This document shows positions 29,860 to 53,900 of a stretch of 64,000 nt of DNA, piece by piece. Positions within the stretch are counted from its first letter, which is position 1, and every line of letters begins with the position of its first letter. The notes beneath the pieces are model-generated. The model was given only the letters and a program-made list of their open reading frames with translations. It did no database searches and was not told where the DNA came from. This DNA is from Monocercomonoides exilis PA203. Its lineage: Eukaryota; Protista; Preaxostyla. Location of the stretch: positions 682,001 to 746,000 of the forward strand of contig LSRY02000032.1 in the NCBI GenBank assembly GCA_001643675.2. The letters are read 5' to 3'. Position numbers and translations under genes: made by a program.

Positions 29860-32800
29860 ATGAAAGTTGTCTCATTCGATTTATTCGGAGAAAAAGCTCT
29901 AAATGTATTTATTGATAAACTATTAATGCAATTTGGGATGCAAAGATCATCCCATTGCTTCGACTCTTAAACATGCAAAGATTATTGAAGGAAGAAGTCT
30001 GTCTACAGCGATTGTCTTGTTGCGCATATTGCTTTAAATATTTTATTATATTTGTTTATTTTTGTTGTATGATGCAAACATTTTAGAAATATTTTGCAGA
30101 GCCAGAAATCTTGAAGAGCCAAAGCATTATTGATGTTCTTCTTGCTCGTTCTTATTTATCAACTGATAAGTTAGCATTTATATATCTTGATGATGGAGAG
30201 CGTATTGGACAACAATTATCTTATTTGCAACTTACCGAGCGTGCAAAGTCGATTGGAGCATATATTCAAAAGAAAAAATTGACTCATCGTTGCTGCTTGA
30301 TGCTTTATCCACTCGAAAGACTTCATTTTGTTGAAGGTTTTATTTTCATTGAAAATATTTTTTTGCACTAGCACCTTTAATTCAAATTGTATTGACTTTT
30401 TTTTAATCTTCAACAATATTCAGCATTTTTCGGAGTGATTTTTGCAGGATGCATTGCAATTCCATGCTATCCTCCAGACCCTAGTCGTCTAAAGAGAACA
30501 ATGGCTCGTTTCAGAGCTATCATTGAAGATGCAAAAAGTCCGGTTGTTTGCACAACTCAAGCCATGATGGGAATGCTCAAACCAGTTATTGCTTCTATCC
30601 CTGAATTTCATGACATTGAAATTTTATGGATTGTGACAGACCAAATTGATAACTCTTATGGAAAAGATTGGGTTAATCCAAATGCATCTAAAGATAGTTT
30701 AGCTTTTCTTCAATACACTTCTGGCTCAACCGGAGTACCTAAAGGTGTTATGGTGACTCATGGAAACATCATTGCAAATGAAAAGATGATTATCAACTGT
30801 TTCCATCACAGTTATGATATGGGTTCAATTTGCTGGCTTCCATTGTATCACGATATGGGTCTTATTGGTCACGTGTTTGGTTCAATGTGGTCTGGAGCTC
30901 CTTGCTATCTTATGGCTCCAACAGATTTCTTGAAAAAGCCATATCGGTGGGTGAAGGCAATTTCAGATTATAAACTTTCGGCTACAGGAGGACCAAACTT
31001 TGGATATGAGCTTGTTGTGAGAAAAACTACACTTGAAGAAAGAAGCAAGCTTGATTTGTCACATTGGAAATTGGCGTATTGCGGATCAGAGCCAATTCAT
31101 CCAGCAGTTGTTGAGCGTTTCTTCAGCTACTTTGCTCCAGTGGGAATCAAAAGAGACATATTTATCCCTTGCTTTGGTTTGGCAGAAGCAACGTTGATTG
31201 TGACTGGACATGAACTTGGAACAGTTCCGCGTATGCTGATGCTTGATCAAGATAAGTTGGGAAAAGGAGAAGCAGAAATTCTGTACTTCCCACCTGGAAA
31301 AGAAGAGGAAACAGGAATGGAAGCAAAATCCTCAAGCGCATCTGCAGTAATTGTCGATAAAGACTCAAAGAAGAGAAATGTGAAGTATTTGATGACAGCA
31401 GGAAAAGTTGTATGGGCAGCAAACATTCGAATTGTTTCCACTGCACCACCTTTTGTTGCACTTCCTGAAGGAAAAGTCGGAGAAATATGGACGAACTCGC
31501 CATCAGTGACAATGGGATACTGGGGAAGAGAAGAGGCAACACGCGAAACATTCAGAGCATTTCTCGACAATGGTGAAGGTCCCTTCATGCGAACAGGAGA
31601 TTTGGGCTTTTTGAATGATGGAGAGCTTTTTGTGTGCGGAAGATTGAAGGATGTGATGATTATCGGAGGAAAGAACATCTATCCACAGGACATAGAAACA
31701 ACCGCTGAGAAAACAGTGGATGCTTTGAGAGCTGGTTGCTCGGCTTGCTTTTCGATTGATTGTGACGATGTGCGAAAGTGGACAGAAAAGCAGATTATCG
31801 AAGAGAAGAAGCTGAATTACCTGTCAGAAGAAGACGCCCAGAATTCTCTGTCTTCGTTGGCAATGCAAAAGAAATCTAGTTCCTCAGAACGAGTCATCTA
31901 TGTTGCAGAAACCAAGACTGATGTGCTTCAAGAGGAAGCGAAAGAGATTGTGCATGCAATCCTCGACAGCGTTTCCACACATCACGACCTGTCTCTCTAT
32001 GCCGTTGCACTGATCAAAGAGAGAACCATCTTGAAGACCACATCGGGCAAAATCCAGCGAAGAGGCACAAAAGCCGCCTTTCTTGATTTTGAGCTGGATT
32101 CTCACTACATTTGGCGCGAGGGGGTTCCACTTCCATCGACAACAGGAGGAAAAGACGGAGCATCCAAAGCCAGAACTGCATCAACATCATCTGCATCATC
32201 ATCTTCTTCTGATGGAAAAGCAGAAACAATGACAAGACAGAAAGCAGCACATCATCTGTCGCAGCCAACAGCTCGCAATGCTGGTTCTCAACAAGCAGGA
32301 GACGGGATGAGAGAGTCATCACCTTCACCAACACCTTCTCCATCTCTGTCGCCTTCGATGTCTCCCTCTCTTTTTGAGCCTGTTTATGGCCAGCAAGCAG
32401 CACTCGAGTCGGAATACGTGTCTTTCCTGCAGAAAAAGATAGCCGAGAGAAAAGGATGGGATCCGTCGACAATCGATTGTGAGGAGACGTTCTCTGCCTT
32501 TGGAATTGACTCAAAAGAAGGCTATGGGCTGATTGGAGAGATTGAAGAGCACACAAATGTGAGGTTGGACAACACTGTTTTGTTTGATTATCCAAACATC
32601 GGCTCGCTTGCAGCATATCTTGCTGGAAGGGCAATCGAGGAACAGGACGAAGAAGCAATAAAAGGCAGATTGGAAGCACAACGAGCAGAAAGAGAAGGAC
32701 ATGAGGGAAACAACGAAGAGATGAGATCAATCAACAGACCCGACGAGTGCAGTGCCAAACAACTTCTTTCTTCTGAGGTGTCAAAAGCACGAGAAGCACA

Positions 32801-35800
32801 ACAGAAGGAGTTGATTGCGATTGTCGGTATGAGCTGTCGTTTCCCCGGCGCCCACTCGACACAAGAGTTCTGGAACAACATCTGCAACGGAGTGGATTCC
32901 ATCACACGCGTGCCTTCCTCTCGTTGGGATGCTGATGCATTCTATTCGCCTGCCCCGTCCACACCTGGCAAGATGAACACACGAATGGGTGGCTTCATCG
33001 ACGGCATCGACCAGTTTGACAGGCGCTTCTTCGGCCTGTCAAACGAAGAGGCAGCAGCGATGGATCCGCAACAGCGCCAAGTTCTGGAGGTGGCTGTGGA
33101 AGCAATCGAAGATGCTGGAATAACACTCAATTCACTAACAGGCTCACCAACTGGTGTCTTTGTTGCAGCTTCTGGATCAAGCGACTATGCTGCAATGCAA
33201 CACAATCCTCATTCATATCAGATGATGGCCAACCAACACAATACCGATCCTTCCTCATCTGATTTGCCTGCTGCCAGCGCCAGCTATTCAGCAACAGGAT
33301 CTGCCATGTCCATTGTTGCAAACAGAATCTCATATCTTCTGGATCTCAGAGGCCCATCAGTTTCAATGGACACAGCTTGCTCATCTTCACTGGTTGCATT
33401 AGATGCAGCTGTCTCTGCTTTGCGTTCTGGACGATGCTCTGTTGCACTGACAGCAGGTGTGAATGTGATCTTGTCTCCGCTGGTGTCTGTGAATCTCTCT
33501 CAGGTTGGTTTCCTCTCACCAGACGGTCACTGCAAAGCATTTGATGCCTCTGCGAATGGCTATGTGCGGAGCGAAGGGTGTGGGTGCGTTGTGCTGAAGC
33601 CGCTGTCTGCTGCTCTGCGAGACGGTGACCGCATCTACGCGTGTGTGCGCTCGACAGCAGTCAACCAGGACGGCAAGTCGAATGGGCTGACTGCACCCAA
33701 CCCGAAGGCTCAGGAAGAGTGTCTGCGGGCAGCTGTGGCTGGGGCGTTGATGGACGGTGCAGCATTGCAGGTGATTGAGGCACACGGGACAGGCACAGCA
33801 CTCGGCGACCCTATCGAAGCCAAAGCGATTTCACACGTTTATTGCCCACCGAACAGAAATGCGAAGAATCCCCTGCTTGTAACTGCAGTGAAGTCGAACA
33901 TTGGCCACTCTGAAATTGCTGCTGGAATGGCTGGGCTGATCAAGACAGCGCTGTCTATCTACACAAAAGTGATTCCTGGTGTTGCCCTCTTCAGAGAATG
34001 CAACAACGCTATCGACGAAGAGCAGCTCAAAATACAGATCGTGAGAAAGACACAGCCATGGCCAAACACAAATGCATGCGGCATCCGATTTGCTGGTGTG
34101 TCCTCATTTGGATTTGGAGGTACCAATGCACACACTATTTTGCAATCGGTTCCAGTTGAAGCTTGCAGAGAAACCGAAGAAGATGCAGATGCTGTGACCG
34201 TTTCGAAGGCATCTGCAGCTGGAATGGTTGCATCACCACCACCTGAATCATCCTCATCTCCAAGTGGAAACGAGAATGAGAACTCACTTCCTGTTGTGCT
34301 TCCTCTGTCTGCAAAGACACAACCATCGCTGAAGCTGCTTATGTCTGCCTTCAAAAAGTACCTGAAGGAAATGGTACAGAACAACTACACATATTCTCTC
34401 TCATCGCTTGTCTCTCCTCTGTTCTTCAACCGCAATCACCATCCAGAGCGTGCAGCTGTCACTGGACGGAATGTGGAAGAGCTTGTCGGCTCGATCGATG
34501 CACTGCTCAGCGACAAGCCACCAAAAGTGGGCGGAGCAACAGGCAGAGCAGCACGAAATGTGGGTGCAGGCACAAAAGTTGGGTTTGTGTTTGTGGGACA
34601 AGGAACAGCATATCCACACATGTGCCAGGAGCTGATGAAAGTGGAAGGACCATTCAAAGACACGATGACAAAGATACAGAAATTGATTCTGGAAATCAAT
34701 CCTAAATTGGACATTTTGAAAGAGATGATGGCAGACAAAGAGAACAGCCGATTGAGCGCATCTACAGCAGTGTCACAGCCATGCATATTTGCAGTGGAGG
34801 TAGCACTGGCAGAGCTGGTGAAGTCGTGGGGTGTGGAGGCGTCGGCGGTGGTGGGGCATTCGATTGGGGAGATTGCAGCGAGTGTGGTGTGTGGAGCGAT
34901 GAGCATGGAGGAGGCAGTGCGTCTGGTGGTGATCCGTGGGGAGTGCATGAGCCGAGCGAAGGAAGGCGGGGCGATGGCGGCAGTGGAGATGTCAGTGGAG
35001 GAGGTGATGAAAGTGCTGGAGAAGTGTGGGGTGAAAGAGAGCTCGGTGACGATTGGGGCGTGGAACAGCCCAACATCGGTGACGCTGTCAGGAGAGACAG
35101 GAGCGATGGACAAAGTGCTTGGGGAGCTGGAGAAGACAGGAGTGTTCTGCCGGAAACTGGATGTGTCGTCAGCGTTCCACACGTGGTACATGGACTCGGC
35201 GCGGGAAGAGCTGGAGAAGCGACTGGGGGTTGTGAAGAACACACATGGGAAGATTGCGTTTGTGTCGACAGTGAGTGGGGAAGAGATTGATGGAGAAGAG
35301 CTGACTGGAGAGTATTGGGGAAAACAAATCAGATCTCAAGTCAAATTCTGCAAAGCTATCGAAACGATGGCAGAAAAAATGAAGATTCGCACTTTCATTG
35401 AAATTGGACCACATCCAGCACTCATACGAAACATTGCAAGTTGTGTAGAAGCAGCTGCCACTTCATCTGCTTCAGCATCAGCCACAATTATTCCAACTCT
35501 TATTCGAAATGAAGACTCATCAGTTGCCATCTCCACAACTATATGCCATCTTTACACCGCAGGAATCCTGCTTCCACAGGCTGTCAGCGCCATCTTTGGA
35601 ATTGTGCGCAAGCCATTCTATGAAACGCCGTTTATTGCATCTCATCCACTTCCACTCACTCCATGGAACCACGAGCGATGCTGGGTGGGCACAGTCTCAT
35701 CAGAACCCTTCAGAGCAGCTGCGCTTTTCTCAAAAACAGCAAGTGCAGTTGATCCACTGGCTGAAGATGCGTCATATGAAGAGCATTTTGTGCCTGCTGC

Positions 35801-38800
35801 ATTGCCAGCCACAAGAACAGGATCAAAGAAGGACAAGAATTTTGTTGTGCTGCTGCCGCAGAAGGAGATGACAGAGCCGATGAAGCATTTGGTCGAGCTG
35901 TTTGCCAGAAAAGGAGACAGAGTGGTGTTTGTTCTCCCACCAGCCACTACACATCACTCGTTCAGCAAATCAAACGAGAAAGGCAAGCAGGAAAAGAAAC
36001 AGGCAAAGATCGAAATTCTGACACCACAAACAAATGAAGTTGTGAGAAGCTATCTGTCTGGATTGAAGCCGAAAGGAAGATCAACTTCAGCTTCAGCATC
36101 ATCCTCTTCTTCTTCTGTTGTGGAATGCCCAGATCAGTTTCTGTTTCTGCAGAGCCCGTCGGATCCGTCTCGGTTGCCGACGCTGTTTGAGATGATGGGC
36201 ACACACTTCATCGGAGGAAGTGAAAGCGAAGGAGCATTCTCTGTGGTGTATGGCTGGGCACTCGACGGAGTATCGTCTGATTCGAGTGAGTTGAAAGCAC
36301 CCACATCAGCCGTGGCAGCCACCTTCCACACGTTTGTGTCGTCGTGGATTGCACACTTTTCGGGTGTGCCTCGTCTGTTTGTGCTGACAGCGGGTGTGGC
36401 ACCTGTGGACTGCACAGGAAATGCTCTGTCGAGCACAGCTGGATGCAACCACTTGACACGCGTGGCTGATCTACAGAAGGAGAAGACAGAAGACGCGAAG
36501 GATGTATCAAACACACTTTCTGAGGCGCCTCTGTGGGGATATGCAGGGAGCATTGGAGTTGAGTATCCAGACTCACACTGCAGTGTGGTGGATGTGAGTG
36601 CTGCACCTGAGGCATCAGCTGAGGATGTGGCTGCATTGTATGCTGAACTCCACTCAGCTACCGAGCAGAGCGAAGATCGAGTGGCCATCCGCGAAGGCAG
36701 CAGGCTGGTGGCAAGACTCAGAAAAGGAGCAGTGTTTGGGAGCGAGTTGGAGAATGAGGAGAATAACTTTGAGGCAGAAGAGCAGAAACAGCATGGAGCA
36801 AGGAAAGGAGAGAGCAGTGGGGCATATGTGATCACAGGTGGATTTGGTGGGTTTGGGCGAAGAGTGGCAGCGTTTCTGGCGTCGTCTGGTGCGACAGCGA
36901 TTGTTCTGGTGGATGTTGCGATTCCGCCCCCATCATCGCCAGCAGGCACAGCCGTTGCTACTCTGAAGTCGGCCTTCAGCCGGTGTAAATTCGATGCGAT
37001 TGCATGCGACGTGGGAGATGCACAGACGCTGCGGCAGAAGCTGATGGAGGTGCCATCCATTGGCCCCAAGCTGCGCATCCGCGGGGTGATGCACTGTGCA
37101 GGGCTGTTGTCGCAGAAGCTAATTGTGCAGTTCAGCGAGGAAGAAATGGCAAAGGTGATGCGTCCGAAGGTGGAAGGAGGATGGGCGCTGCACGAGATTG
37201 CGTTGGAATCTGCGCGTCTGTCGCCTTCTATGCTGAAGCACTTTGTGGTGTGGTCGTCGATCTCTGCTGTCGTTCCAACACACGGCGAGGCTGCATATGC
37301 ATCAGCCAATGCGTTTCTGGATGCGCTGACACAATACAGACGATCAATTGGACAGCCATCCACGTGTCTGAACTGGGGTGTGATTGGAGATGCAGGAATG
37401 ATCACCACACAGTCATCAGCCACGCTGAATGCGATGAAAGACATCGGACTTGGATCCACACCAATCGACACAGCAGTCAGAATTCTATCACACACACTTC
37501 AGTTCCCTCCAGCGAATGGGCAGCAGCAGGTGTATCGGCTGGACTGGCAGAAGTGGCTGGAGCTTCACCCAGCAACAAGAAGATACGATGAAGTGAAGCC
37601 ACGTCCAATATCATCAGCAGCCAGTCTGCTGGATGCATACGAGCAAGCAGGAGCATCCGATGCATCAGCCTCAGCATCTTCTGCATCTGCTTCGAGTTCA
37701 GCGTCTGCCTCAGGAGCAGCAGGAGGCATTGCACGAAGCTTTGAGGAGATCAAAGAGTGGCTGCTGGATGCAGTGAGCGAGCATCTGGGAATGAAAGCAG
37801 AGGAGATTTCGCCTGAAGAGCCGCTGATGCAGTATGGCCTGGACAGCATGGGAGTGATGTCACTGACACGGGCACTGTCGTCATATCTGGGTGTGACTAT
37901 CTCACCCACACTTTTGTATTCATACAGCACAGTCACACAGATCGCGTCACACTTTGCAGCTTCTGATGAAGAGCTGGCTCAATCATCTGCCTCTGCTTCA
38001 TCATCATCGACATCTGGTTCATCATCATCAATTTTGAAGAAGGAATCATCGCTTGGCAAGTCATCTCCACTCGACTCGTCTCTGGCGATTGTGGGGATGA
38101 GCTGCAGATATCCAGGCTCGTGCCACTCGCTGGCCGAGTTTTGGTCGTTCCTTCAGACGAAGAAGGATGGAGTGATTGCAGTGCGTCCAGACAGATGGGA
38201 CATCGAGACATACTTGGCAAAGGACAACGACACGCAGGCGCCTGGGAAGATGGTGTCTCCTTGTGTTGGGTCATACGACGAGATGGACAAGTTTGATCCA
38301 CACTTCTTTGGGATCTCTCCGAGGGAGGCAGAGCGGATGGACCCACAACAGCGTTTGGTGCTGGAGTGCAGCTGGGAGGCGCTGGAAGATGCAGGAATTG
38401 TGCCAGAGTCGCTGAGCGGGAGCGACACGGGGGTGTTTGTGGGCATCTCGTACTCAGACTACGGGATGATGCAGAACGGGAGCATCAATGATGTGAACCC
38501 GTACTCTTCGACAGGCGGGGCACTATGCATGGCAGCCAACAGGCTGTCGTATCTGCTTGATCTGCGCGGGCCGTCGGTGGCGTGTGACAGCGCGTGCTCG
38601 TCTTCGCTGTCTGCGCTGCATCTGGGCGCAAACTGCATCAAGCAGGACGAGTGCAGCCTGGCCATTGTGAGTGGTGTGAACTCAGTGCTGCTACCACACG
38701 GAGCCATTGCCCTGACGAAGACAAGTGCTCTGTCGCCAGAAGGAAAGTGCAAGACATTCGACTCCTCTGCCGATGGGTTTGTGCGTGCTGAGGGGTGTGG

Positions 38801-41800
38801 TGTGGTGATCCTGAAGCCTTTAGCACAGGCACTGCGCGATGGCGACCGCATCTATTCGACGATCCTGGCATCGCTGCTGAACCAGGACGGAAGAAGCAAT
38901 GGACTCACTGCACCGAACGGACTTGCACAGCAGGCGCTGCTGAAGGGTGTGTATGCGAAGGCAGGAATCGATCCGTCGGAGGTGTCGTTCATCGAGACAC
39001 ACGGAACAGGTACGAAGCTTGGCGATCCAGTGGAGGTGCAGTCGCTGTGTGCTGTGTTGTGCCAGAAGGGCAGAGACGCAGAGACAGCTCCACTGCATTT
39101 GGGATCAGTGAAGTCAAGGATTGGGCATTCAGAGTCAGCTGCTGGTGTGGCGTCGCTGATCAAAACGAGTCTGACGTTGTGGAAGAGGAAGCTGACACCG
39201 AATCTGCATGTGAAGGAGCCGAACGAGATGATTGCGTGGAAGGAGTATCCATGTCTGCATGTTCCGGTGGAGTGCAGCACACTCTATTCGCAGGAGTATC
39301 TGAAGCAGTTGAAGAAACAGCATCTCCCTCTTCCGCAATACGATGTGCCTGAATCGAGTGAGAAGAGCGACGAGGAAGAGGAAAGTGCAGCAGGAGAAGA
39401 CAAAGGCACTTTGTATGCAGGATTGTCTTCATTTGGATTTGGTGGGACGAATGCACACATTGTGGTGCAGAGCCCACTTTCGTCGTGGGAGCCAAAAAGA
39501 CACAGTGGGAAGCAGTCGAAACGGACACACTTTATGCTTCCTCTGTCAGCACGCTCAGACAGCGCATTGCAGAACCTGGCAGGGAAGTATCGCGACTACA
39601 TCTTGTCATCAGCATCTTTGAGGAAGATGAAGAAGAGCCAGGCGAAGGAAGAAGGAGAAAAGCGGATTGAATTCTTTGATGCACCTGCTGATCTCCAGGC
39701 TGCTGATTTGTGCTACACAGCTGCCTTCAGAAGACAGCATCTGTCGCATCGTGGATGCTTCTGTGCATCATCACTCGAAGAGCTGGCAGAAGAGCTCGAC
39801 CGCTTTGCACGACAGGCGCCTGCACCAGAAAGAGCGAAGGGAGAACCAGCAAAGACAGCCACTGTGACGGGAACGCTTCCTGTTTCAACAGTTCAGAGAC
39901 GTGTGGGATTTGTCTTCACTGGACAGGGATCTCATTGGCTTTCGATGGGAAAGAGATTGATTGAGAGCGAGCCTGTGGTGAAGAGGACAATTGCACAGAT
40001 AGATGCACTGGCACAACGTGTGTTTGCTTCATTGAAGGCAGAAGATCCAAAGAGGAAAGTATTTGAGTTCTCCATCATGGAGGAGCTGATGAATGAAGAT
40101 GAGAAGGAATCACACATGAAATCTACAGCAGTGTCGCAGCCATGCATATTTGCAGTGGAGGTAGCACTGGCAGAGCTGGTGAAGTCGTGGGGTGTGGAGG
40201 CGTCGGCGGTGGTGGGGCATTCGATTGGGGAGATTGCAGCGAGTGTGGTGTGTGGAGCGATGAGCATGGAGGAGGCAGTGCGTCTGGTGGTGATCCGTGG
40301 GGAGTGCATGAGCCGAGCGAAGGAAGGCGGGGCGATGGCGGCAGTGGAGATGTCAGTGGAGGAGGTGATGAAAGTGCTGGAGAAGTGTGGGGTGAAAGAG
40401 AGCTCGGTGACGATTGGGGCGTGGAACAGCCCAACATCGGTGACGCTGTCAGGAGAGACAGGAGCGATGGACAAAGTGCTTGGGGAGCTGGAGAAGACAG
40501 GAGTGTTCTGCCGGAAACTGGATGTGTCGTCAGCGTTCCACACGTGGTACATGGACTCGGCGCGGGAAGAGCTGGAGAAGCGACTGGGGGTTGTGAAGAA
40601 CACACATGGGAAGATTGCGTTTGTGTCGACAGTGAGTGGGGAAGAGATTGATGGAGAAGAGCTGACTGGAGAGTATTGGGGAAAACAAATCAGATCTCAA
40701 GTCAAATTCTCCAAGGCAATTGAGTATATGATCAAGTCACCACTTCACATCAACACATTCATCGAGCTTGGCCCACACACATCGCTGCTGGGCTATATTA
40801 AGCGTGTTGCTGCTGTGGCTTCATCAGCACCATCATCGATTCAGCTTGTGGGATCATTGCGCAAAGGAGAGAATGAAAGTCTGTCGATGCTGTCAGCATT
40901 GGGACATTTGTTCTGTGGAGGAATGAAGCCGAAGTGGAGCCAGGTGGGTGGATACGATGGAGTGTTTGTCCGAGCACCAACATATGCATGGGATCACGCG
41001 AGCTATTGGCTGAACGACTCGATCATCAGCCACTCAATCAGTGCGAGGATGTCACCAATCACAGGAAAGATGGTCAGCGGACGATCGAATTCAGCAGAGC
41101 TGGCCAAGATGCAGGGAATGGACTCACTCTCCATTCTGAACGGAACACCCACAACGCATCCACTTCTCCGCTTCCACACAGAATATGCAGGAGGCATCCA
41201 CATCTGGGAGACTCCGCTGAAGAAGGACGAGTCTGCTCGTCGCTTCATCTACGACCATTATGTGATTGGGGCAGTGCTTGTGCCTGGTGTGACATACATC
41301 GAGATGGGTCTTGGACTGTCAGCACTTCTCAATGGAGACGGACCGCACACAATCACAGACATCCGATTCGACAAGCCGCAGTTTTTGAACGTGGAAGATC
41401 CACGACACTACCAAATCCATCTGGTTCCAGTGCCAACCACATCAAGCGAGGCTGTTGGAACAATCGACATCTATTCACGTGCACCAGTTGCAGAAGACGA
41501 TGCCAAATCTTCTTCTGCCTCTGCTTCGGCATCATCATCATCAGAGAAATCAGGTGCCAGTGGTGAAGACAGCTCGAAGGTGCAGTGGACACATCACGCA
41601 TCGATGACAACACACTTTTTGAGAGAAGACGGTTGGTATTCTGCTCCCAAACAGGCCCAGCTGCAGAAGAAAGTTGATCTGAAGAAGCTGAAAGAGCGAT
41701 GCCCGAACGAGCTGACAAGAGCAGAGTATTACGACGAGCTGTTTGAGAGAGGACTGCAGCTGCGAGATCGGTTCAAGGGGGTGACGAATGTGTATTTGTC

Positions 41801-44800
41801 AGACACAGAATGCTTGGCAAGGATTCAGCTGGCAGAAGGAAACGACCGAAGAGGAATGCATCTGCACCCGACGATGCTGGACTCTTCGCTGCAGTGTGCA
41901 GGAGCAATGCTTCTGTTCCACCGGACGTTGACCGACAAGCGGGGCATCTACTTGCCAGTCTCGCTGGACAAACTGCATTCGTGGCGCCAGTGGCCAGATG
42001 TGGTGTTTGCGTGGGTGCGTCTGCTGTCCTTCCAAGAGAACTCGCTGCTGGTGGACATCACAGTGTATGACGAAGAGGGGCTGGAGGTGGCTGACATCCA
42101 CCACTTCCGCTGCAGATACGTGGAGGACACACGAAATGTGGAGGACGACATGTATAACGTGATCTGGACAGAAAGCTTGCTGAAGGCAGAGGACGAGATT
42201 AAGCACAAGGAAGCAGAGGATGAAGACGGAAATGCCGAAGAAAGAGAGAAAGGAGATGATGGTGAGATAGAGAAGATTGTGCCAGAGGGAGAGAAGAAAG
42301 CGAAGGAAAGCTATGTTGTGCTGCTGTGCGGCGACGAAGAGACTCCACAGAACAAAAGAGTGAATCGACTGGCAAAAGCGCTGACAGAAAGCGGATTCGC
42401 TGTGTATAGAATATATTTCAGTGAAAATGGAGCCGGATTTGATGGAAAGAAGAAGATCGCTCGGGTGAGGATGGTGGAGAAAGAAGACTACGAAAAAGCG
42501 CTGACACAAATTGCAGAGGCTGCTTCGAAATCTGGACGAAATGTTTGTGCAGCCATCATTCATGGAGCATTGCTGAATGATGAGACACTTCTTGCAGCTG
42601 AAGGCGCAACAGAAGCTACACTTCACAAAGTTCAATATGATGGATGCTTGTCTGCGCTTCAGATTGTGCAGTCCATAATGACTCAAACTGCTCCTCCTCG
42701 TCTGTTTATTCTGACAGCAGGAGCACATGATATCAAGTGCAGAAACAATGAAGCAGCAGCACTTGTTCAACCAGGTGCGTTCTCTATGTGGGGCTTTGGA
42801 GGAGTTGTGCAGAGCGAATGCCCGACACTGCGTGCAACGTTGATTGACTTCACCAACACCGGAAAGGACGAACTGGACGAAGAAGAAGCTAAAACATTTG
42901 CACAGCTGGTGACAGTTGGCTCGCTTCAACAGAATGTGATTGCATCGATTGCAGCAGCAGACAGTGAAGCGTTGAGAGAGGAAGAAAGTTCATCAGCATC
43001 GAATGAAAAGAAAGAAACAGCCAACAACGGAACAGCATCATCACCTGCAATGCTTGCACTCGAACAGAATGTTGCTCTCTCGCACAATCGTGTCTTTGTG
43101 GATCGAATTGCAAAGGCACAACGTCCAGTTATTCCAATTTCAACAGAAATGGCTGGATTCGATTCACCGCTAGCATGGAGACTGGAGATTGGCAAGCCAG
43201 GCAATCTGCAGACTCTCCGTGCTGTGGAGATTCCTCCAATTTCAGCAGATAAATGCGATCCAGTTACACACAGACGAAACCCAGAAGCTGAAGAGCTGGA
43301 GCTAAAGGTGTATGCAGTTGGAGTGAACTTCCGAGATGTTCTGAAGTCGATGGGGCTGTATCCAGCAGAATTTGACGAGACACTTTATTTGGGAGCTGAA
43401 TGCTCAGGTATTGTGACAAAGGTTGGAAAGGATGTGAAGAGCGTGAAAGTGGGTGATCGTGTTGTTGTTTGTGCATCTTCGTGCTTTGCGTCATATGTCA
43501 TTGCGAAGGAGGCCTACACAGCTGTAATTCCAGAGAACATCTCGTTTGAAGAGGCTGCATCGCTTCTGGGTCCGTTTTTGACCGCACATTACGGACTGGT
43601 GACTGAAGCTCGCATCAAAAAGGGAGAAAAAGTGCTGGTGCATCTGGGATCTGGTGGTGTTGGTATGGCAGCGATCATCATCTGCAACTACTTTGGATGC
43701 GAGGTGTTTACCACAGCTGGGTCGCCAAAGAAACAAGAAGTTGTGACGAAACCTCCATTCAACGTGAAGCCTGAAAACGTGTTCAGCTCTCGAACACTGG
43801 CATTTGTGGATGGAATTCGTGAGAGGACAAACGGAAGAGGAGTGGATGTGGTGTTGAACTCACTGACTGGTGAAGGGCTGGAAGAAGGCTTCAGATTGTT
43901 GGCACCACGCGGACGATTTGTGGAGATTGGCAAAAGAGACATTTACGATAATTCAAGAATCGGAATGCAACCATTTGCTGAGAACTGCACATTTATTGGA
44001 GTTGCAATGGACGATTTATTTGGAGATGACGAGGAGGTTGGATCAGCTGTCATGAAAGAAGCAATGGAACTGTTTGCAACAAAAGCTTACACTCCAATTC
44101 CATACATTGCATATCCAATAAGCGATGTGACGTCCGCTTTCTTGCTGATGGCTGGAGCAAAGCACATTGGAAAGATTGTGTTGACGTTGCATGATGCTCC
44201 TGCTATTCCTGTGGAAATGCGTCCAATTCGCTCTCTGACTGCGAAGGAGGATGTGGATGACGGTGCATTCGTTGTGACAGGAGGATTGGGTGGCCTTGGC
44301 CAAGCTCTTCTTCGATGGCTGGCTCAGCGAGGAGCCACACAGCTGGCTGTTCTGGAGATGCGAAGTGAAGAAGAGATGAGAGAAAGAGACAAGACAAACA
44401 CGATTGGTCGGTGCTTGGACTCTCTTCGTCACCACGGATGCCGAGTGGAGGTGTTTGTGACAGATGTGTCAGACAAAGCGAAGTGCAAGGCAGCAGTTGA
44501 TGCTGCACGAAAATCATTTGGAAAGATTGTTGGAGTGTTCCATCTGGCTGGCATCATCGACGACTGCCTCATCGACCAGCTGGATGCCAAGCGATTCCTG
44601 CGTGTGTGTGCCCCTAAGATTTCAGGAGGATGGAATCTGCACGAAGCAACACTCCCCGACAAGCAGACACTGCGATACTTTGTGCTGTTTTCTTCGGTTG
44701 CAGCTATTCTTGGACAGCCAGGACAGACAAATTATGCTGCCGCAAACTCATTCTTGAACGGTCTTGCACAATATCGAAGATCTGCTGGTCTGCCTGTGAC

Positions 44801-46373
44801 ATGTCTGAATTGGGGTCCGTTGAGTGGAGCTGGAATGATGGCGCGAAATGAGGAGCTGACAAAAGCAACAGAAGCACAAGGCATCCACATGATCACAATC
44901 AAACAGATGCTGACTGCAATGCACATCATCATTGACAGAGATCTGAAGCTGCACAAAGAACCAGCAAAGAAAGAGAAAGGAGAGAAGAGTGAAGAGACAG
45001 CAGAAAGGAATTGCTCAGAGTGGTCGACTGGAGTGCTGCAGGTTGACTGGGAAAGGTGGTTCAGCCGCAACCCATTTGCTGCGAGATCACCTCGTTTCTC
45101 GTATCTTTCATCGAAGTCTGCGCAGGCAAGCCATTCAGCCGCGCTGAAGCTGAGGAAAGCGGTGCTGAGTGAGCAGAACGAAGAGAAGCAAATAGCAATG
45201 CTGGGAGAGGTGCTGACACGACTGGTGAGCGGAGTGACTGGACTGGCTGAATCAGCAATTCCGGCAGAGCGACCTTTGAACGAAATGGGCTTGGATTCGA
45301 TGGTTGCAGTTGAATTGAGAGCACGGATGGACCAGGAGATCGGATATTCAGTTCCAATTGTGACATTCGTGCAGGGTGCATCTGTGAAGGCTGTGTGCGA
45401 AAACATTCTGGAGCAGATGAAAGGCTCTTCACAGTCTTCATCTTCCTCTGCCTCCGCTTCATCATCTGCTTCATCATCTTCTGCTTCGAGCAGCACAGGT
45501 TCCAAGAGCGAAGCGATGGTGGAGCTGACGAAGGGATCAGGAGCAGTCTATGCTATTGTGTGCCAAGCAGGTGGAGTGGCATCTTCAATGAACGGACTTG
45601 CAAATCATATGACACAAATGCTGAAGAGAGGCGTAGTGGCATTTGAAGATCCATCACTTTATGGAACGGCAGCTCCATTCAAGTCAGTGAAGGAAATGGC
45701 CACGCAATACATCGCACTGCTGAAGGAGAAGCAACCGAAAGGCCCATATTCATTGTGCGGATTCTCATTTGGTGGCTTTGTGGCACAAGAAATGGCACAT
45801 CAGCTGATCGAGAAAGGCGAAGAGGTGGCAACACTGTCGCTGGTGGATCCTCCATCACCATCTCTGTGTGGTGCAAAGACAACGAGAGGAAGATCAGAGA
45901 CATGTGCCGTGCTGTTGATGGCAGCTGGAGTGAAGGGAACAGCAAAGGTGAACGACAGCGTGGCAAAGCGAGTGATGAAGCGGTTGAGCGAAGTGAAGGA
46001 GGACAGCAGCGAGGCAAGATGGAGCGTGTGTGTGGAAGAGCTGAAGAAGATTGGAGTGATCACAAGGCCAGGAGAGGAAACAGTGCTGAAGAAGACTTGG
46101 ACAGTTATTGCCAACGAGATTGAACTGCTTCCATCACATCACCCAGGTATCATTGCTGGAAGCAGCGGATCAACAACTAAGTGCGTATTGTACCAGCCGC
46201 AGCAGAACAAGAAGTTTGTGAAGGATTTGTTGCTTCTGGACGAGGCAGAGAGCGAGTGGCGCAAGGTTATTCCATCTCTTCAGGCTGTGCCTATTCCTGG
46301 AGATCATTGGACAATCATCGGTGCAGAACTCATGGATGAGACAGCTGATCGGCTGGCTAAGGCTGAACAATGA
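29860..46373 (+). CDS. Bimodular type I polyketide synthase with FAAL loading module: FAAL-ACP-KS-AT-KR-ACP-KS-AT-DH-ER-KR-ACP-TE (~5,414 aa)
   Basis: Exons 29860-29904, 30087-30336 and 30424-46373 splice in frame. FAAL: FLQYTSGSTGVPKGV, WLPLYHDMGLIG, FGLAEATL, RTGDLG, KTTSGKIQR. ACP serines: GIDS, GLDS, GLDS. KS: DTACSSS/DSACSSS, HGTGT and IGHSE (twice). AT: GHSIGE and SAFH (twice). DH: DHYVIGAVLVPG and HPTMLDSSLQ. ER: NFRDV and GSGGVG. KR: TGGFGGFG...YASAN and TGGLGGLG...IIDD...YAAAN. TE: GFSFGG...GDHW. Confidence 0.95.
34760..35349 (+). repeat. 590-bp direct repeat, copy 1 (core of AT domain, module 1)
   Basis: Matches 40121-40710 at offset 5361 with one mismatch seen (34775 A vs 40136 G). 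The off-frame 169-aa ORFs over both copies are identical. Confidence 0.95.
40121..40710 (+). repeat. 590-bp direct repeat, copy 2 (core of AT domain, module 2)
   Basis: Near-identical to 34760-35349. Confidence 0.95.
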
Positions 46374-47971: not shown

Positions 47972-50900
47972 TCAAACATCTGTTACAGTGTCCTCCTTGT
48001 TACTGTCTTTTTGATTTGCCAAATCATCGTTATCTAAATCTTTTTGTAAAGGCTTCTTCTTCTTCTTTCTTTTTCTTTTTCTTCGCACAGAAGGAGAGTC
48101 AGCATCTCCAACCTTTGAATCAAACTCTTCCCCAACAATAAAGTCTTCTTCCATCGTATTGCGAGATCTTCCTGAGCCATCCTTGCCTCTGGACGTTATT
48201 ATAACATGGGACGTGCGATACGGAGAATCTGACCCATTCCTCTCCTTCAGTAGTGGATAAAGCATCGCTCTTTCTTCTTTGTCCATGCTGCTGTCATCTT
48301 CCTCATACTCTGAGCCATCTTCATCGTAGCCTTCTTCTTCTCCTCCGTCTTCATGCTGCACATCAGCACCTCCCATCTCTTCTCTCTCCAGATCTGACAG
48401 TCGAACTTGGTGCTGGTGCATCTCATCTCCTCCTTTATGCTCATTTGCCATTGAAACATCATTCTCGTTCTCTGCGTAATCCATCTCTTCTGCCCCTCTT
48501 CTCCTCATTTTCCTTCCAGAATTCCGCTGCTGCTCGTCCCTTCCTTCTGCTTTTCTCTCCTTTGCAGCGTGTGCCAGTCTGCGCGGAGTCATCCAGTTGA
48601 GAAAGTTGTGCAGTCCAGTCTCCATCATTGAGGTGTCGTCGTTCATCTCCTCCACCAGCGCTGTAGCTGCAGCAGATGTGGGCGTGTCAAACGTTGACAG
48701 TGCCTGTGCATTTCTCCGAGTGCGCGAAGGAGTAGTGAAAATTGGGATGTTGGGATTAGTCTGCGAGAGATGGAACGAGTGGGAGACAGGCAGTGCGTGC
48801 ATTGAAGGTGACAGTGATCTTTGATGGGACGATGAATTTGTGAGAGAAGGCGTAAGAACAGAGCCATCGACTGATATCTCCATGCTTGGCACCAAGCCAT
48901 TTTTGCTGCCAGAGCGAATTTCGTTTCTGCCTCGAGAAGGAGTCAGCAGCATCACTGGCTCATTCCGCTCAATTATCCCTTGTGACAGCGGAGGTGTGAC
49001 AATCATTTGCCTCCTATCGTTTTCTCTCTCTTTCCTTCTGGCTGCTTCACTTCCTCCGTCTGTCATTTCAGCAGAGGAAGAGCGTGTTGGAGTCGGATGC
49101 TTTGAGCGATTGCCCTTCGAATGACTGTGTGACGAAGGCGATGAGTGTGCTGAATGGTCTGCATTGTCGTCAGTAAACGAGTCAATGACAGGAAGAAGGC
49201 GCGATGTTCGAAGTGTGTTGGTTCCGAGCCGAAATGAAGGAGAAAAAATAGTCTGCGGAATATCTTCACCGTTGTTTGTGTCTGAATGAACGGGAGTGAT
49301 TGGACGAGACGGTGGCTTAGAGCCAGAATGTGACTCATTGGAAAAGGACAATTCTGGTGAGAGCTTTGATGAAGTGGAAGACGATGCGTTTGCAGACGAG
49401 CCTGAAAATGAAGAGGACAAGGAAGTCAGAGACGGGTTGAACGATTTTGGTGAGAGATTTGTGTCTGATAAGCTGGAAAGGTGTTGATGGAGCGGTGAAT
49501 TGAACGAGTCGATGTCTGAGAGCTGCGAGTTTGGCGAGGGTGGGATTGGTGTCAGAGGAGCATGTGTAGATAAGAAATGACCAGAAGGTGAAGAAAGTGT
49601 GGATGTTGGAGGAGGATACGGAAGCGTTGGAGAGTCAAACATTGTATTCATCATCCGGTTGGGGCTCAGAAAAGGTGTCGCATTTGACGTGTAAGTTGCA
49701 TTGGAGAAATTGTTGGATGAAAGCATTGAAGATGTTGATGGAGTCTGCTGCACTGGATATCCCAATGAAAATGCGTCTGATGTGTTGAGCATGCCCGTTC
49801 CATTGTTGTTCACTCTGGGTGTGAATGAGGTGGATGGGGAGAACAGAAGGAGCGGACGATTTGAGGTGAAAGACGGGGAAACGGTGCCGAAGGATGATGG
49901 AGATGTTGGAGATGTTGGAGGAGTGATCGCATGGAACGAACCATATTCGTTAGAATCGGAATAATATGATGGAATCGACGTAGTCAGTCCAGTAGAAGAG
50001 TATATCGTAGATGGCTGTGTGGGATGGAAACCAGGTGTTGTATCAGTCATTGATCTTGAATTGAAAACAGATGGAGTATAGGTAAATGCTGGAGTGGTGT
50101 GATAAAAGTCCTGATGAAGTGATAATGACTGGACCGATGCTGTTTCTGTGTATCCGAAAGGATACTGCAGTGAAGAATGCGAAGAAGGTGTGTCAGAAAC
50201 AGAAGAAAGCATTCCTGCTGGTATGATTGATGGAGATGTTGATGATTCATTTGAAGGGGCAATTGTGATTGGCGGAAGAGGAGCAGGCAGAATTGGATGT
50301 GGAACGACTGGGATAAGTGCAGGTGTTGTGATGGAAGGCGACAAAGTCGAAGACTGCTGGCTGAGTGTGGTCTGGCTGTCTCCAGTTACAGTTGGTGATG
50401 GCTGTATTGAAGGTGTGAATCCAGAAGGTACACCATCATAGTAGTGTTTGAGTGAGGAGGTCGATGGAGAAGAGAAGTTTCTTGTGCGAGGCGTTGAGTC
50501 TACCAATAATCCGTCACTTTGTGCTGTGGGGAAGGAAGGCATGGCTGAGACGGTTGGGACAGTTGAGATGACTGTGCTTGATGCTTCTGGTGAAGACGCA
50601 AAAGCAGCAAGGAAAATGTTCATCAGCTTGACTGAATCGAACGAAGAAAGAGAGCATGTTTCGAAGTCAGATGCATCTGTGCTTGAGCTCTCATCTGCAG
50701 ACAGCTCAGCTGCGAGTGCCTCTTCCTCAGCTATTCGCTCATCGCGTGGAATCTTCGACAGATCATTCGAATCCGCATTCGCACTCGATGAAGCCTCAAC
50801 ATTCTGGTCTTCCTCCATTTTGATGTCTATGTGTGCATCGGTGGTTTTTATTTCTTCTTCCATTTGAATCGATGCTTCGCTTTTGACAAATGTTTCTGCT

Positions 50901-53900
50901 TCATCAGAATTTTCGTTGTTTTCTTCAATCCCCTTTTCATATTCATTCAGAATCTCCTCAGAAAGCGGAAGGTCGTTTTCCAGCAGCTCCTCGACATCGT
51001 CGCAGTCTTCGTCAAATCCCACCGGAAAGTCAGAAATAACCTCGTCTTCGATTCCGGCAAACACAGCTGACTCAGAAAAAGGACTGCCCACTTCTGCATC
51101 TTCATCCCTGGCAGCATCGGCTGATGCTGCACTTTGTGTGATTCCAGTCTCTTCTTCACCAGATTTCTTGTCTTCTACATCCATTCCACCCTCAGCTGCT
51201 TTCGAATGCTCCTCATCTTCTGCTTCCTCTGCCTCTTCTGCCTCTTCTGCCTCTTCTTCATCGTCCTCAGTGCACTCAGCCAGAAGCAGGCTCATCTTGT
51301 GCTTCATCCGGATGGCATCCCACAGATCATACAGCACATTCATCACCTGCTGCAGACGCGCCAAGACGCCATCGAGCGAAAAGTTGATCTGCGGCAGCGG
51401 CTGAAACAGCGAAGAAGAGCTGCCACTCGAAGCGAACTGTGCGTGGGAAGAAGGAGAGCGAGGGGAAGACGGGGCAGAGTCGAAGGAGCCTTCTCGTTTG
51501 ACTACTGATGGTGTGGAAGGGAAGGTCTGTGTAATCAGAGGAGGATGGGTGAGGCCAGCGATTCGCGCCTGTGGGTGCTCAATGGACGGTCCATTTGAGG
51601 TGTTTGCAGTAGAGGAAGAGGAGGAAGAGGAAGAGGAAAACGAGGAAGAAGAAGAAGAAGAAGAAGAAAGCAAAGAAGTTGATGAGACTTCAGAGTTTTC
51701 TTCTTCTGAATTGTTCACACTGCGCGAAAGCTTCGATTTTCTGCGTTCACTGAGGACAGGTCCCTTTCCGAGAGCCAATCCTTCAGTGCTCATTGAATAC
51801 TGCCCTTCATCAAACTCGTCAATTCGCTCCATCCTCTGCATAGAGCTTCTCTGCATCATTCTTTTCCTTCTTCTTTCTTCTCTTTCTCGCTGCTTCATCT
51901 TCCTCTTCGCCATCTTCCTCTTCTTTGCTGTGTCTTTTATTCGGTCCTTCCTCTTTATCCTGTCTCTCAGCTCCTTCAGCACTTCTCTTCTTGCTCTTTC
52001 TCTTTCGTTGTGCCATAAAACGGCTGCAAAGTCAGCATCAGGTAGGACAGCAATGACAAGCAAGGAGAACAGAGGTATCTTGTCATACAGCACAGACTCC
52101 AGTGTGTGGAGTGGGATGAATGGAAGAAGCGGATCTGTCGACTTGAGCAAATAAGAGTTCTGAGACTCCACTGAACTTTGCTGTGATGTAATATTTCCAG
52201 AGGGAAAAGAATCGTCCACCATTTTGTTAGAGCCATCGAGTGTGTTGATGAGCTCATTATGTTCTTCACTTCCTCCATTCTCATCCAACACAATCACTCG
52301 TGTGATTGTTCCAGAGACTGGAGGTGTGACAGGCGATGGCAGTGTGTCCTCGACATCTGCATCAAGAAGAGTGTATCTTCGTTGGAGAATGGATGATTGA
52401 GGAGAAGGCGCAACAGGGGCGTTTGTGTCTATTTCCATTGAAGATGAGTCAGAAGTGATGGATGGAGGAGAGTGTGCTAAAGATGATTGGTCTGTCATTG
52501 ATTGGTGATGCTGCTGCTGCTGCTGTTGTGAATCAAAACTTTCTGTTTGATTTTGCTTTTGGTCAGCAAAAGTGTCAGTAAATGGCTGATTTGTTGATTG
52601 GGCATTTGGATTGTTGTTTGATGAAGAAGAAATTTCTTGTGAAATGTTTGAAGGTTGCTGATTGATCGAAGATGAGGCAGAAGAAGAAGAAGAAGAAGAG
52701 GCTGAAGTGCTTTGAGATAGAGGAGAAGGAGCAGAAGGAGGAAGCACTGAATTTGATGGAAGTGAATTGGATGTTGTTGAATTGTTGTTTGAATTGAATT
52801 GATCAGAAGTCGAAGAAGTCGAAACAGTATTTTGCACAGAAAGTGGAGAAGAAGAGGAGGAGGAAAGAGAAGAAGAAGAAGAAGAAAGTGAAGAAATAGC
52901 AGAAGAAAGATGTGTTCCGCTTTGTATCAGTTTAAGCTGGGCCTTTGCGTAGTCATTCAGTTGAGCAGTTGAAGAGGAAGACAACGAAGAAGGAAAAGAT
53001 GAATGAAAAGAAGGAGACACAACAGAATCTTTAGAAGAAGAAGAACGAGAAGGAGAAGAAGATGCTTGTTCTGATGAAAGTGCATTTGAATTTTGTGGAA
53101 GAGAAGTTGCAGACGAGCCAAACGAAGAGGCAGAAGAAGAAAGACTGAGCTGAGGGAAAGAAGGAGAAGGCATAGCTTGTGGAGAAGAGGAAGGAGGCTG
53201 AGGCGGAGGCGGAGGAAAAGCAGCAAAAGAAGGGAAGATCTGCTGGGGAACAGGAAACTGGCTCATGTAATTGGACTGCTGCTGCCCTTGTTGTGTTTGT
53301 GTGGCAGGGTTTCCTTGGAGAGAGGCAGGCGAATAAGGAAACGGAGTGGCTGTCAGAGCAGAAAGCGCTATCGAAGGCGATGTCTGATGTGATGCTGCTG
53401 TGTTTGCGGCTTCTTGATCACCGTCGCTCAGCTGAGGCAGAGCATTCACATCTGAAATTTGGCTGTTTGCCTGTTTTTTTCTCTCTCTCTCTTCTCTTTC
53501 TCTCTCCATCCGCTCCATTTCCCTCTGCCGCTTCATTTTTTTCTCTGTTTCTTTCCGCTCAAAGCGCTCGACCTCGTTCCACTCCTCTTCAAAGCTCTGA
53601 ATGGCGCTTTCAGACCCGAAACGTGAAAGGGCATCGCGAAGAAAGAGGCAGCGGACGGTGAAGAAGAAAGAGAGGGAATCTCGTTGGAATGCAGCATATG
53701 CAGATGAAAGAGAGGCTGGCTTTTGTGTTTGGAGTGGGATTTGCTGCTTTGTTTTTGTTGAGGAAGAAGAAGAAGAAGAAATCTTATTCTGTTCCATCGA
53801 ATTGGATGAACTTCCAAGTGTAGATATTGTTTGCTTGCTTGCTGAACACGCAGAATTTTCATTTCTCGTTCTGTCAGAAGATGTCTGTGCGTTTGAGATG

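Follow-up and report, generated by a model that had tools for sequence, protein, structure and literature searches.

The subject of this analysis is a nuclear gene of Monocercomonoides exilis PA203, a gut protist and model eukaryote without mitochondria, which lies in a window of 64,000 nucleotides (contig LSRY02000032.1 of assembly GCA_001643675.2, positions 682,001 to 746,000) and encodes a polyketide synthase (PKS). The gene is intact, and on balance we consider it more likely than not that it specifies a fatty-acid-primed, two-module reducing type I PKS whose product is a 5-hydroxyacyl chain, freed as the acid or as a delta-lactone. The prediction offers chemists a defined lipid target, namely a 5-hydroxy acid or delta-lactone with four carbons more than the fatty acid supplied.

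Pfam searches of the plus-strand frame 30435-46373 returned 13 domains in the encoded order FAAL-ACP-KS-AT-KR-ACP-KS-AT-DH-ER-KR-ACP-TE, with E-values from 1e-10 to 1e-89. These comprise a fatty acyl-AMP ligase (FAAL) with a loading acyl carrier protein (ACP0), a first module made up of ketosynthase (KS), acyltransferase (AT) and ketoreductase (KR) domains plus an ACP, a second module which also includes a dehydratase (DH) and an enoylreductase (ER), and a terminal thioesterase (TE). Both KS1 and KS2 contain the condensing Cys-His-His triad, an AT is present inside each module, and the phosphopantetheine serine is kept in all three carrier domains. Furthermore, the M. exilis genome holds a candidate phosphopantetheinyl transferase (one ACPS-family match above the cut-off) and, for the supply of malonyl-CoA, three carboxyltransferase genes resembling acetyl-CoA carboxylase. 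By these features the gene is classed as a cis-AT modular type I reducing PKS. The motifs quoted in an initial annotation of this DNA, located by script, are all at their expected places, and the start which it gave, 32800, is that of KS1 (32808). Its malonyl-type fingerprint (GHSIG, xAFH) was recovered in both ATs as GHSIG and SAFH, together with a carboxylate-binding arginine 25 residues past the serine; both fingerprints, however, fall within a near-identical tract shared by the two domains, and thus count as one observation rather than two.

Module 1 contains a KR as its only reductive domain, in agreement with the earlier statement that the post-AT1 linker (LPLTPWNHERCW, at 35649-35684) leads straight into the KR region. 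Between AT1 and KR1 (420 residues), no DH family was matched in Pfam at E<=10 and nothing rose beyond noise, and the motif HxxxGxxxxP occurs once in the whole protein, in module 2. The homolog search was run with frame residues 1700-2520. In a 631-residue query taken from frame residue 1700, BLAST similarity to bacterial KR didomains opens approximately 190-320 residues in, and the part before it, which includes serine-rich low-complexity loops, is too short for a DH, a domain of about 280-300 residues. The AlphaFold model of residues 1700-2330 (predicted local distance difference test, pLDDT, 71.7; predicted template modelling score, pTM, 0.75) shows alternating strand-helix units and not a double hot-dog. 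To guard against bias, its input alignment (A2) omitted rows that carry a DH, and another (A1), with bacterial rows having a DH upstream of the KR, was discarded. Foldseek matched this model to whole KR didomains, namely AmpKR2 of amphotericin synthesis, KR1 of 6-deoxyerythronolide B synthase (DEBS) and TylKR1, over 540-560 columns with a target-normalised TM-score of about 0.7. The absence of a Pfam match, the single HxxxGxxxxP and the KR-didomain fold together speak against a cryptic DH, which the initial annotation had itself named as a possible refutation.

The second refutation which it had foreseen, an inactive KR1, did not hold either. The motifs of KR1 are HCAGLLSQ from 37092, a lysine in RPKVEG (37161-37178), and serine, tyrosine and asparagine within 37254-37310; K546, S576, Y589 and N593 are invariant among 28 aligned KRs, KR1 included. 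In comparison with a second copy of the gene in the same genome (see below), the ratio of nonsynonymous to synonymous substitution (dN/dS) is 0.049 for KR1 and 0.126 for its structural subdomain, at dS of about 0.13-0.19. An intact NADPH site, the K/S/Y/N set and purifying selection point to an active KR1, and the earlier remark that it lacks LDD (reading LLSQ) while keeping K/S/Y/N was accurate. Since KR1 lacks both LDD and the A-type tryptophan (SSISAVVPTHGEAAY), the configuration of the hydroxyl is not predictable.

For module 2, Pfam and motifs bear out the earlier description of DH, ER and KR followed by a TE, and KR2 carries the B-type IDD motif (HLAGIIDD), as suits a partner DH. The interval between DH2 and ER2 matched no Pfam family at E<=1, methyltransferases included, which speaks against an extra domain there; by analogy with the usual layout of DH-ER-KR modules, it is presumably a pseudo-KR.

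The N-terminal head is assigned to the fatty acyl-AMP ligases and continues into a carrier domain, as is characteristic of FAAL-primed PKSs. In NCBIfam, the models for fatty acyl-AMP ligase and FadD32 fit it best (1e-97 to 5e-94, versus about 1e-30 for FadD CoA ligases), the solved structures closest to it are all FAALs, with the FAAL domain of a PKS from Picosynechococcus PCC 7002 as the best (5e-104), and the long-chain FAALs FadD32, FadD23 and FadD28 are among the best family and structure matches. The AMP-binding match of the frame beginning at 30435 opens at profile position 68. A longer serine-rich segment lies in that region of the N-terminal subdomain where the FAAL-specific insertion, a feature which blocks the use of CoA, would be expected.

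At the other end of the protein, the TE is a type I domain of the alpha/beta-hydrolase fold, with a Ser-Asp-His triad at frame residues 5111, 5138 and 5291; in an alignment of 11 sequences (A3), no row departs from Ser82 or Asp109, and His262 is kept almost throughout. Its model (pLDDT 85.5) shows a four-helix lid of about 80 residues. The structural neighbours, at 16-25% identity, are the TEs of NocB, of an Acinetobacter nonribosomal peptide synthetase (NRPS), of human fatty acid synthase (FAS) and of Pks13, the last of which is also the best NCBIfam match (6.3e-13). The TE could hydrolyse the chain, lactonise it or pass it to an acceptor.

In the proposed mechanism, the FAAL would adenylate a free fatty acid and load it onto ACP0 without the involvement of CoA, and KS1 would join this starter with malonyl-ACP1 charged by AT1. 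KR1 would then turn the 3-keto group into a 3-hydroxyl, and no activity of module 1 would be available to dehydrate it. After attachment of a second malonyl unit by KS2, the new keto group would be reduced fully by KR2, DH2 and ER2, so that ACP2 would carry a 5-hydroxyacyl chain, the starter plus four carbons, in which the carbinol carbon is the former carboxyl carbon of the starter. Most simply, the TE would free the 5-hydroxy acid; alternatively, attack by the C5 hydroxyl would give the saturated delta-lactone. The hydroxyl would derive from NADPH reduction, and oxygen would not be required. A 5-hydroxy acid or delta-lactone had already been deduced by colinearity in the initial annotation, and chemical logic, the conserved architecture and the precedent of an engineered bacterial synthase support this deduction, whereas the starter, the single pass, the mode of release and the product itself are what we infer; the further phrase 'mid-chain' hydroxylated lipids overstated the case for a hydroxyl at C5.

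Several points weigh against this assignment. That each module acts in a single pass is not readable from the sequence. KR1 can be placed with neither the A-type nor the B-type enzymes by its fingerprint, and its lid, VVPTHGEA, is unusual; this lid sequence and the LLSQ variant are both kept in the oxymonad Blattamonas. The NCBIfam matches of the FAAL all fall under the curated cut-offs, the query being N-terminally truncated, and the chain-length preference of FAALs is not predictable from their phylogeny (PMC12820801). A 'scavenged' starter is not established, because other large KS-bearing megasynthase genes are present in the M. exilis genome. Finally, the nearest relatives of the TE include a hydrolase (FAS TE), cyclising or epimerising NRPS TEs and the acyl-transferring Pks13, so that more than one mode of release is plausible.

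Among the alternatives, repeated use of a module, likeliest module 2, survives best, though we regard it as unlikely. Iteration or stuttering of module 2 would place the hydroxyl at C7, C9 or further, repeats of module 1 would lead to a polyol, and the enzyme would then make longer (poly)hydroxy lipids. The sequence forbids nothing of this kind: the AT cores are near-identical, the KSs are closely related members of one clade, and no gating between the modules is evident. Eukaryotic type I PKSs and FASs, moreover, commonly iterate. On the other hand, a separate KR-only module would be needless for an iterative enzyme, and two modules with different reductive sets are found colinear in Monocercomonoides, Blattamonas and a metagenomic family (P0016), a pattern to be expected of one-pass synthases. 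In M. exilis itself, a second copy of the gene is located about 335 kb further on the same contig (G000:C28:~1017376-1033089), with a frame of 5,237 residues and the same 13-domain order. The Blattamonas nauphoetae protein KAK2944744.1, annotated as 'putative long-chain-fatty-acid--AMP ligase FadD26', can be aligned along its length in a single colinear segment (52.8% identity) and shows the same set of Pfam domains, and the metagenomic P0016 (4,888 residues, on contigs of 65% G+C) shares domain count and order at 33-38% identity. When 82 KS domains were placed in a quick maximum-likelihood tree, KS1 of the oxymonads grouped, with moderate support, with KS1 of P0016 (approximate likelihood-ratio test, aLRT, 92) and KS2 with KS2 (aLRT 89), and a KS from another M. 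exilis PKS joined both pairs (aLRT 94). This topology fits a two-module arrangement that is older than these lineages and has been kept, as expected if the modules perform separate tasks.

Two further observations concern these relatives. The P0016 family, of about 4,890 residues and found in ERZ15609969 and ERZ15610578, has poly-Asp and poly-Gln runs and is split into 3,128 and 1,757 residues in one contig; in GTDB genomes, searches with low-complexity peptides as patterns returned only distant single-domain matches to it, and the neighbouring genes on a second contig offer no clue to its origin. Another M. exilis megasynthase, P0092 (4,251 residues, G000:C5:~1338000-1348000), combines, by precomputed Pfam annotation, a FAAL-like head, KS, AT, DH and KR with an aminotransferase-family domain (PF00155), and in the tree its KS branches as sister to the clade that holds KS1 and KS2 of the present gene.

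Slightly less likely than iteration is a TE that functions as an acyltransferase and passes the 5-hydroxyacyl chain to a sugar, polyol, amino alcohol or lipid, resulting in an ester lipid, as Pks13 passes mycolates to trehalose. The position of Pks13 as best family match and close structural neighbour, as well as the large helical lid, would agree with such a role. The identity to Pks13, however, is only 17-19%, the TEs of NocB and human FAS score equally well or better, and no partner transferase or acceptor pathway adjoins the PKS gene.

We consider it improbable, and more so than the foregoing, that the starter is an acid of short or medium chain length, or one unusual in some other way. 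The enzyme would then make a small hydroxy acid or delta-lactone, which might serve, for instance, as a diffusible signal or as a deterrent. Characterised FAALs cover C4-C18 (PMC12820801), and the FAAL heads of the two M. exilis copies are only 61% identical, suggesting different starters. Since a review lists the substrate of the Picosynechococcus FAAL as unknown, the chain length is not established by the nearest structure. Against a starter of this kind stand the long-chain FAALs and the Picosynechococcus domain as best matches of the head, as well as the published view that the organism relies on preformed fatty acids. The published analysis reports endoplasmic reticulum elongases that use malonyl-CoA, but found no synthesis or degradation of short-chain fatty acids (PMC6759080). 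This metabolism is compatible with a preformed starter, and a scavenged long-chain acid, which would be extended from C14-C18 to C18-C22, is the presumed one.

The comparison of the two M. exilis copies also bears on whether the gene is functional at all. All domains show dN/dS of 0.01-0.27 at dS of about 0.13, which indicates purifying selection on every domain. In DNA, the copies agree at 53-77% of positions across the FAAL and ACP0, where dS is saturated, and unevenly within KS1; from about 33400 up to 330 nt beyond the stop codon they agree at 94-99%, and at 95% taken over the whole stretch from mid-KS1. Either FAAL head is 58-60% identical to that of Blattamonas at the protein level, roughly the same distance as separates the two heads from one another (61%). 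The simplest account of this mosaic would be an old duplication in which the extension body has been repeatedly homogenised while the starter-selecting heads were kept distinct. Within the otherwise similar body (97-99% in the surroundings), the C-terminal end of ER2 (43935-44234) stands out with 84% DNA and 83% protein identity between the paralogues, and ER2 also has the highest dN/dS of all domains (0.27).

A comparable homogenisation is seen within each gene. The AT cores of the two modules share a tract of 590 nt, while the sequences flanking the two copies are unrelated in register. In the paralogue, the corresponding pair (L011 5971-6560 and L013 1329-1918) has one mismatch within the gene, versus 18-19 differing sites between the genes. 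One difference within and 18-19 between genes therefore speak for continuing conversion inside each gene and rule out mis-assembly. In Blattamonas, compared at the protein level only, AT1 and AT2 contain an identical run of 216 residues (residues 1434-1649 and 3096-3311), yet matches the M. exilis tract at just 59% identity; homogenisation between similar boundaries has thus lasted across genera. The AT1 and AT2 of P0016, by comparison, are just 38% identical. Taken together, these patterns identify the AT cores, as far as sequence comparison can tell, as the site of long-lived intragenic gene conversion with conserved boundaries. The same repeat might raise suspicion of mis-assembly. That the gene has no product, being an artefact of assembly or else a relic that is silent or in decay, is nevertheless very improbable, given a 15.9-kb stop-free frame found twice in the genome under the selection described above, and the recurrence of the repeat in the paralogue, with copy-specific substitutions, and in the Blattamonas protein.

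The homogenisation of the AT-core tracts and the existence of paralogues which differ mainly in their FAAL head are new here, and this concerted evolution, along with the head-versus-body mosaic, provides a clean eukaryotic example of gene conversion shaping modular synthases. As a tentative and rather doubtful extension, the gene could belong to an oxymonad-specific, O2-independent pathway to 5-hydroxy lipids or delta-lactones, in which gene conversion unifies the body (between the ATs and between the paralogues) and selection keeps two old FAAL heads for two starters, the products being unrecognised membrane or signalling lipids.

The gene model and the coordinates of all features are collected in Table 1. 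The window is eukaryotic DNA, as seen in its AT-rich spacers (26-30% G+C), its short introns of the GT-AG type, and its genes for kinesin and WD40 proteins. The PKS reading frame is free of stops in a single frame of the plus strand from 30396 to 46373. Upstream of it, the exon at 30087..30336 has a weak NCBIfam match to an NRPS/PKS N-terminus, and its open frame lacks an ATG and is preceded by a stop; splicing across the following intron restores the frame (HFVE-A-FFGV). The short ATG exon upstream is a plausible start of the gene and, if counted, brings the product to 5,414 residues. A hidden intron that would remove a domain from the long exon is unlikely, as G+C falls below 30% in just one 60-nt stretch of the frame. 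The G+C content is 42.5% in the FAAL part (30435-32100) and 51.4% in the homogenised body (33300-46373), versus 26-30% in the flanks, and the G+C-rich body may result from GC-biased gene conversion.

Table 1. Features of the PKS gene (positions within the 64,000-nt window)
Feature	Position	Strand	Evidence and remarks
Putative first coding exon	29860..29904	+	ATG, 15 codons (45 nt); GT donor after 29904, AG acceptor before 30087; predicted from sequence only
Exon for N-terminal FAAL part	30087..30336	+	N-terminus of Blattamonas ortholog aligned by tblastn at 30099-30336, resuming at 30424
Intron	30337..30423	+	87 nt, GT..AG, phase 1, 22% G+C; coincides exactly with gap in Blattamonas protein alignment
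Main exon	30424..46373	+	15.9 kb without stop, closing in stop codon; remaining FAAL and all other domains
FAAL, main part	30435..32114	+	Pfam AMP-binding 1.4e-43; AMP-dom_DIP2-like
ACP0, loading carrier	32427..32621	+	PP-binding 5.5e-12; Ser in GIDSK, 32502-32516
KS1	32808..33983	+	Pfam 3.3e-89 and 6.4e-35; DTACSSS 33369, HGTGT 33783, KSNIGH 33891
AT1, malonyl-type	34584..35561	+	Pfam 1.4e-61; GHSIG 34854-34868, SAFH 35169-35180, Arg at +25
AT-core tract, copy 1	34760..35349	+	590 nt, one base differing from copy 2
Structural (pseudo-)KR subdomain	35685..36818	+	Low-complexity loops, no dehydratase; model and Foldseek
KR1, catalytic subdomain	36819..37385	+	Pfam KR 2.1e-43; TGGFGGFG and K/S/Y/N present; LDD and A-type Trp lacking
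ACP1	37755..37952	+	PP-binding 1.3e-16; GLDSM 37836
KS2	38079..39212	+	Pfam 2.6e-82 and 1e-35; DSACSSS/HGTGT/KSRIGH
AT2, malonyl-type	39909..40925	+	Pfam 4.6e-61; GHSIG 40215-40229, SAFH 40530-40541
AT-core tract, copy 2	40121..40710	+	590 nt, inside AT2
DH2	41157..42131	+	PKS_DH_N 2.3e-10, PS-DH 1.5e-25; HYVIGAVLVP 41256-41285; DxxxQ partner (DSSLQ) 41880-41903
DH2-ER2 interval	42132..43286	+	Presumed structural KR subdomain and acidic low-complexity linker
ER2	43287..44183	+	ADH_N 1.7e-11, ADH_zinc_N 5.5e-14, ADH_zinc_N_2 5.8e-15; GSGGVG NADPH site 43647
KR2, B-type	44262..44825	+	Pfam KR 3.3e-57; HLAGIIDD from 44541; K/S/Y/N present
ACP2	45210..45401	+	PP-binding 2.7e-10; GLDSM 45288
TE	45564..46322	+	Pfam Thioesterase (PF00975) 1.5e-18; GFSFGG 45759-45776; GDH 46299-46307

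Downstream, the PKS gene is adjoined by a coding-like frame on the opposite strand (47972-56572, minus strand; 2,866 codons, G+C about 45-48%), which matched no Pfam family at E<=0.001. Further along the minus strand, two transposase-like frames (57634-58665 and 59676-60566) contain an ISXO2-like DDE domain (3.9e-19) and a DDE_1 endonuclease domain (2.9e-12), respectively.

In the literature, a 2026 paper (PMC12820801) notes in passing that Preaxostyla have FAAL-PKS fusions and that M. exilis has FAALs, without architecture or product. The metabolic map of M. exilis makes no mention of a PKS (PMC6759080), and the Preaxostyla genome paper mentions neither PKSs nor fatty acids. Nothing relevant came up when the literature was searched for a PKS that makes 5-hydroxy fatty acids, or for a system that links a FAAL to a delta-lactone.

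Several characterised systems nevertheless resemble parts of the enzyme. In another protist, Cryptosporidium parvum, the megasynthases CpFAS1 and CpPKS1 load preformed medium- or long-chain fatty acids by means of an N-terminal acyl ligase-ACP unit and elongate them in a PKS-like manner (PMC2995488). The loading unit is thus alike, whereas the Cryptosporidium enzymes have three or seven modules, end in a reductase (yielding alcohols or aldehydes), are encoded by intronless genes and belong to an unrelated lineage. Because a TE stands where those have the reductase, the M. exilis enzyme is not of this type. The M. exilis paralogue and Blattamonas KAK2944744.1 have the same domain order, and neither is characterised.

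Mycobacteria provide a parallel in chain logic. In phthiocerol synthesis, the FAAL FadD26 hands a long fatty acid to the KR-only modules of PpsA-PpsC; the hydroxyls formed there are retained, and the next module is fully reducing. The FadD26-Pps system consists of separate proteins with more modules, uses methylmalonyl units in later steps and has a condensation-type release domain. The FAAL priming and the surviving hydroxyls of KR-only modules are similar to those predicted for the M. exilis enzyme, at only about 30% identity, and source names of the FadD26-Pps type are included among the homolog matches to residues 1700-2520.

The Picosynechococcus PCC 7002 PKS which provides the nearest solved FAAL is the olefin synthase of that strain. 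According to a review, cyanobacterial olefin synthases have the architecture FAAL-ACP-KS-AT-KR-ACP-ST-TE (ST, sulfotransferase), and their first six domains therefore stand in the same order as those of the M. exilis protein. After ACP1, however, the latter continues with KS-AT-DH-ER-KR-ACP-TE, and no sulfotransferase before the TE was found among its Pfam matches. With a fully reducing second module in place of the sulfotransferase, decarboxylative olefin formation is not expected, and the lack of a sulfotransferase sets the enzyme apart from the olefin synthase family.

The closest mechanistic resemblance is to an engineered enzyme. A hydroxyl at C5 is in an excellent position to close a six-membered lactone, and DEBS1-TE is the classic case of this. 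When the KR of module 2 in DEBS1-TE was swapped for a KR+DH+ER set, a triketide lactone fully reduced at C3 was formed (PMC6264292). This construct differs from the M. exilis enzyme in being bacterial, in loading propionate via an AT-ACP rather than a FAAL and in the use of methylmalonyl extenders, so that the resemblance is one of mechanism and not of family. In both, nevertheless, the loading unit is followed by one module with a KR alone, a second with KR+DH+ER and finally a TE, and in the engineered synthase the delta-lactone is closed via the C5 hydroxyl introduced by module 1. If the prediction proves true, the M. exilis gene would encode, in natural form, an equivalent of the bimodular lactone synthases that PKS engineering has built and employed.

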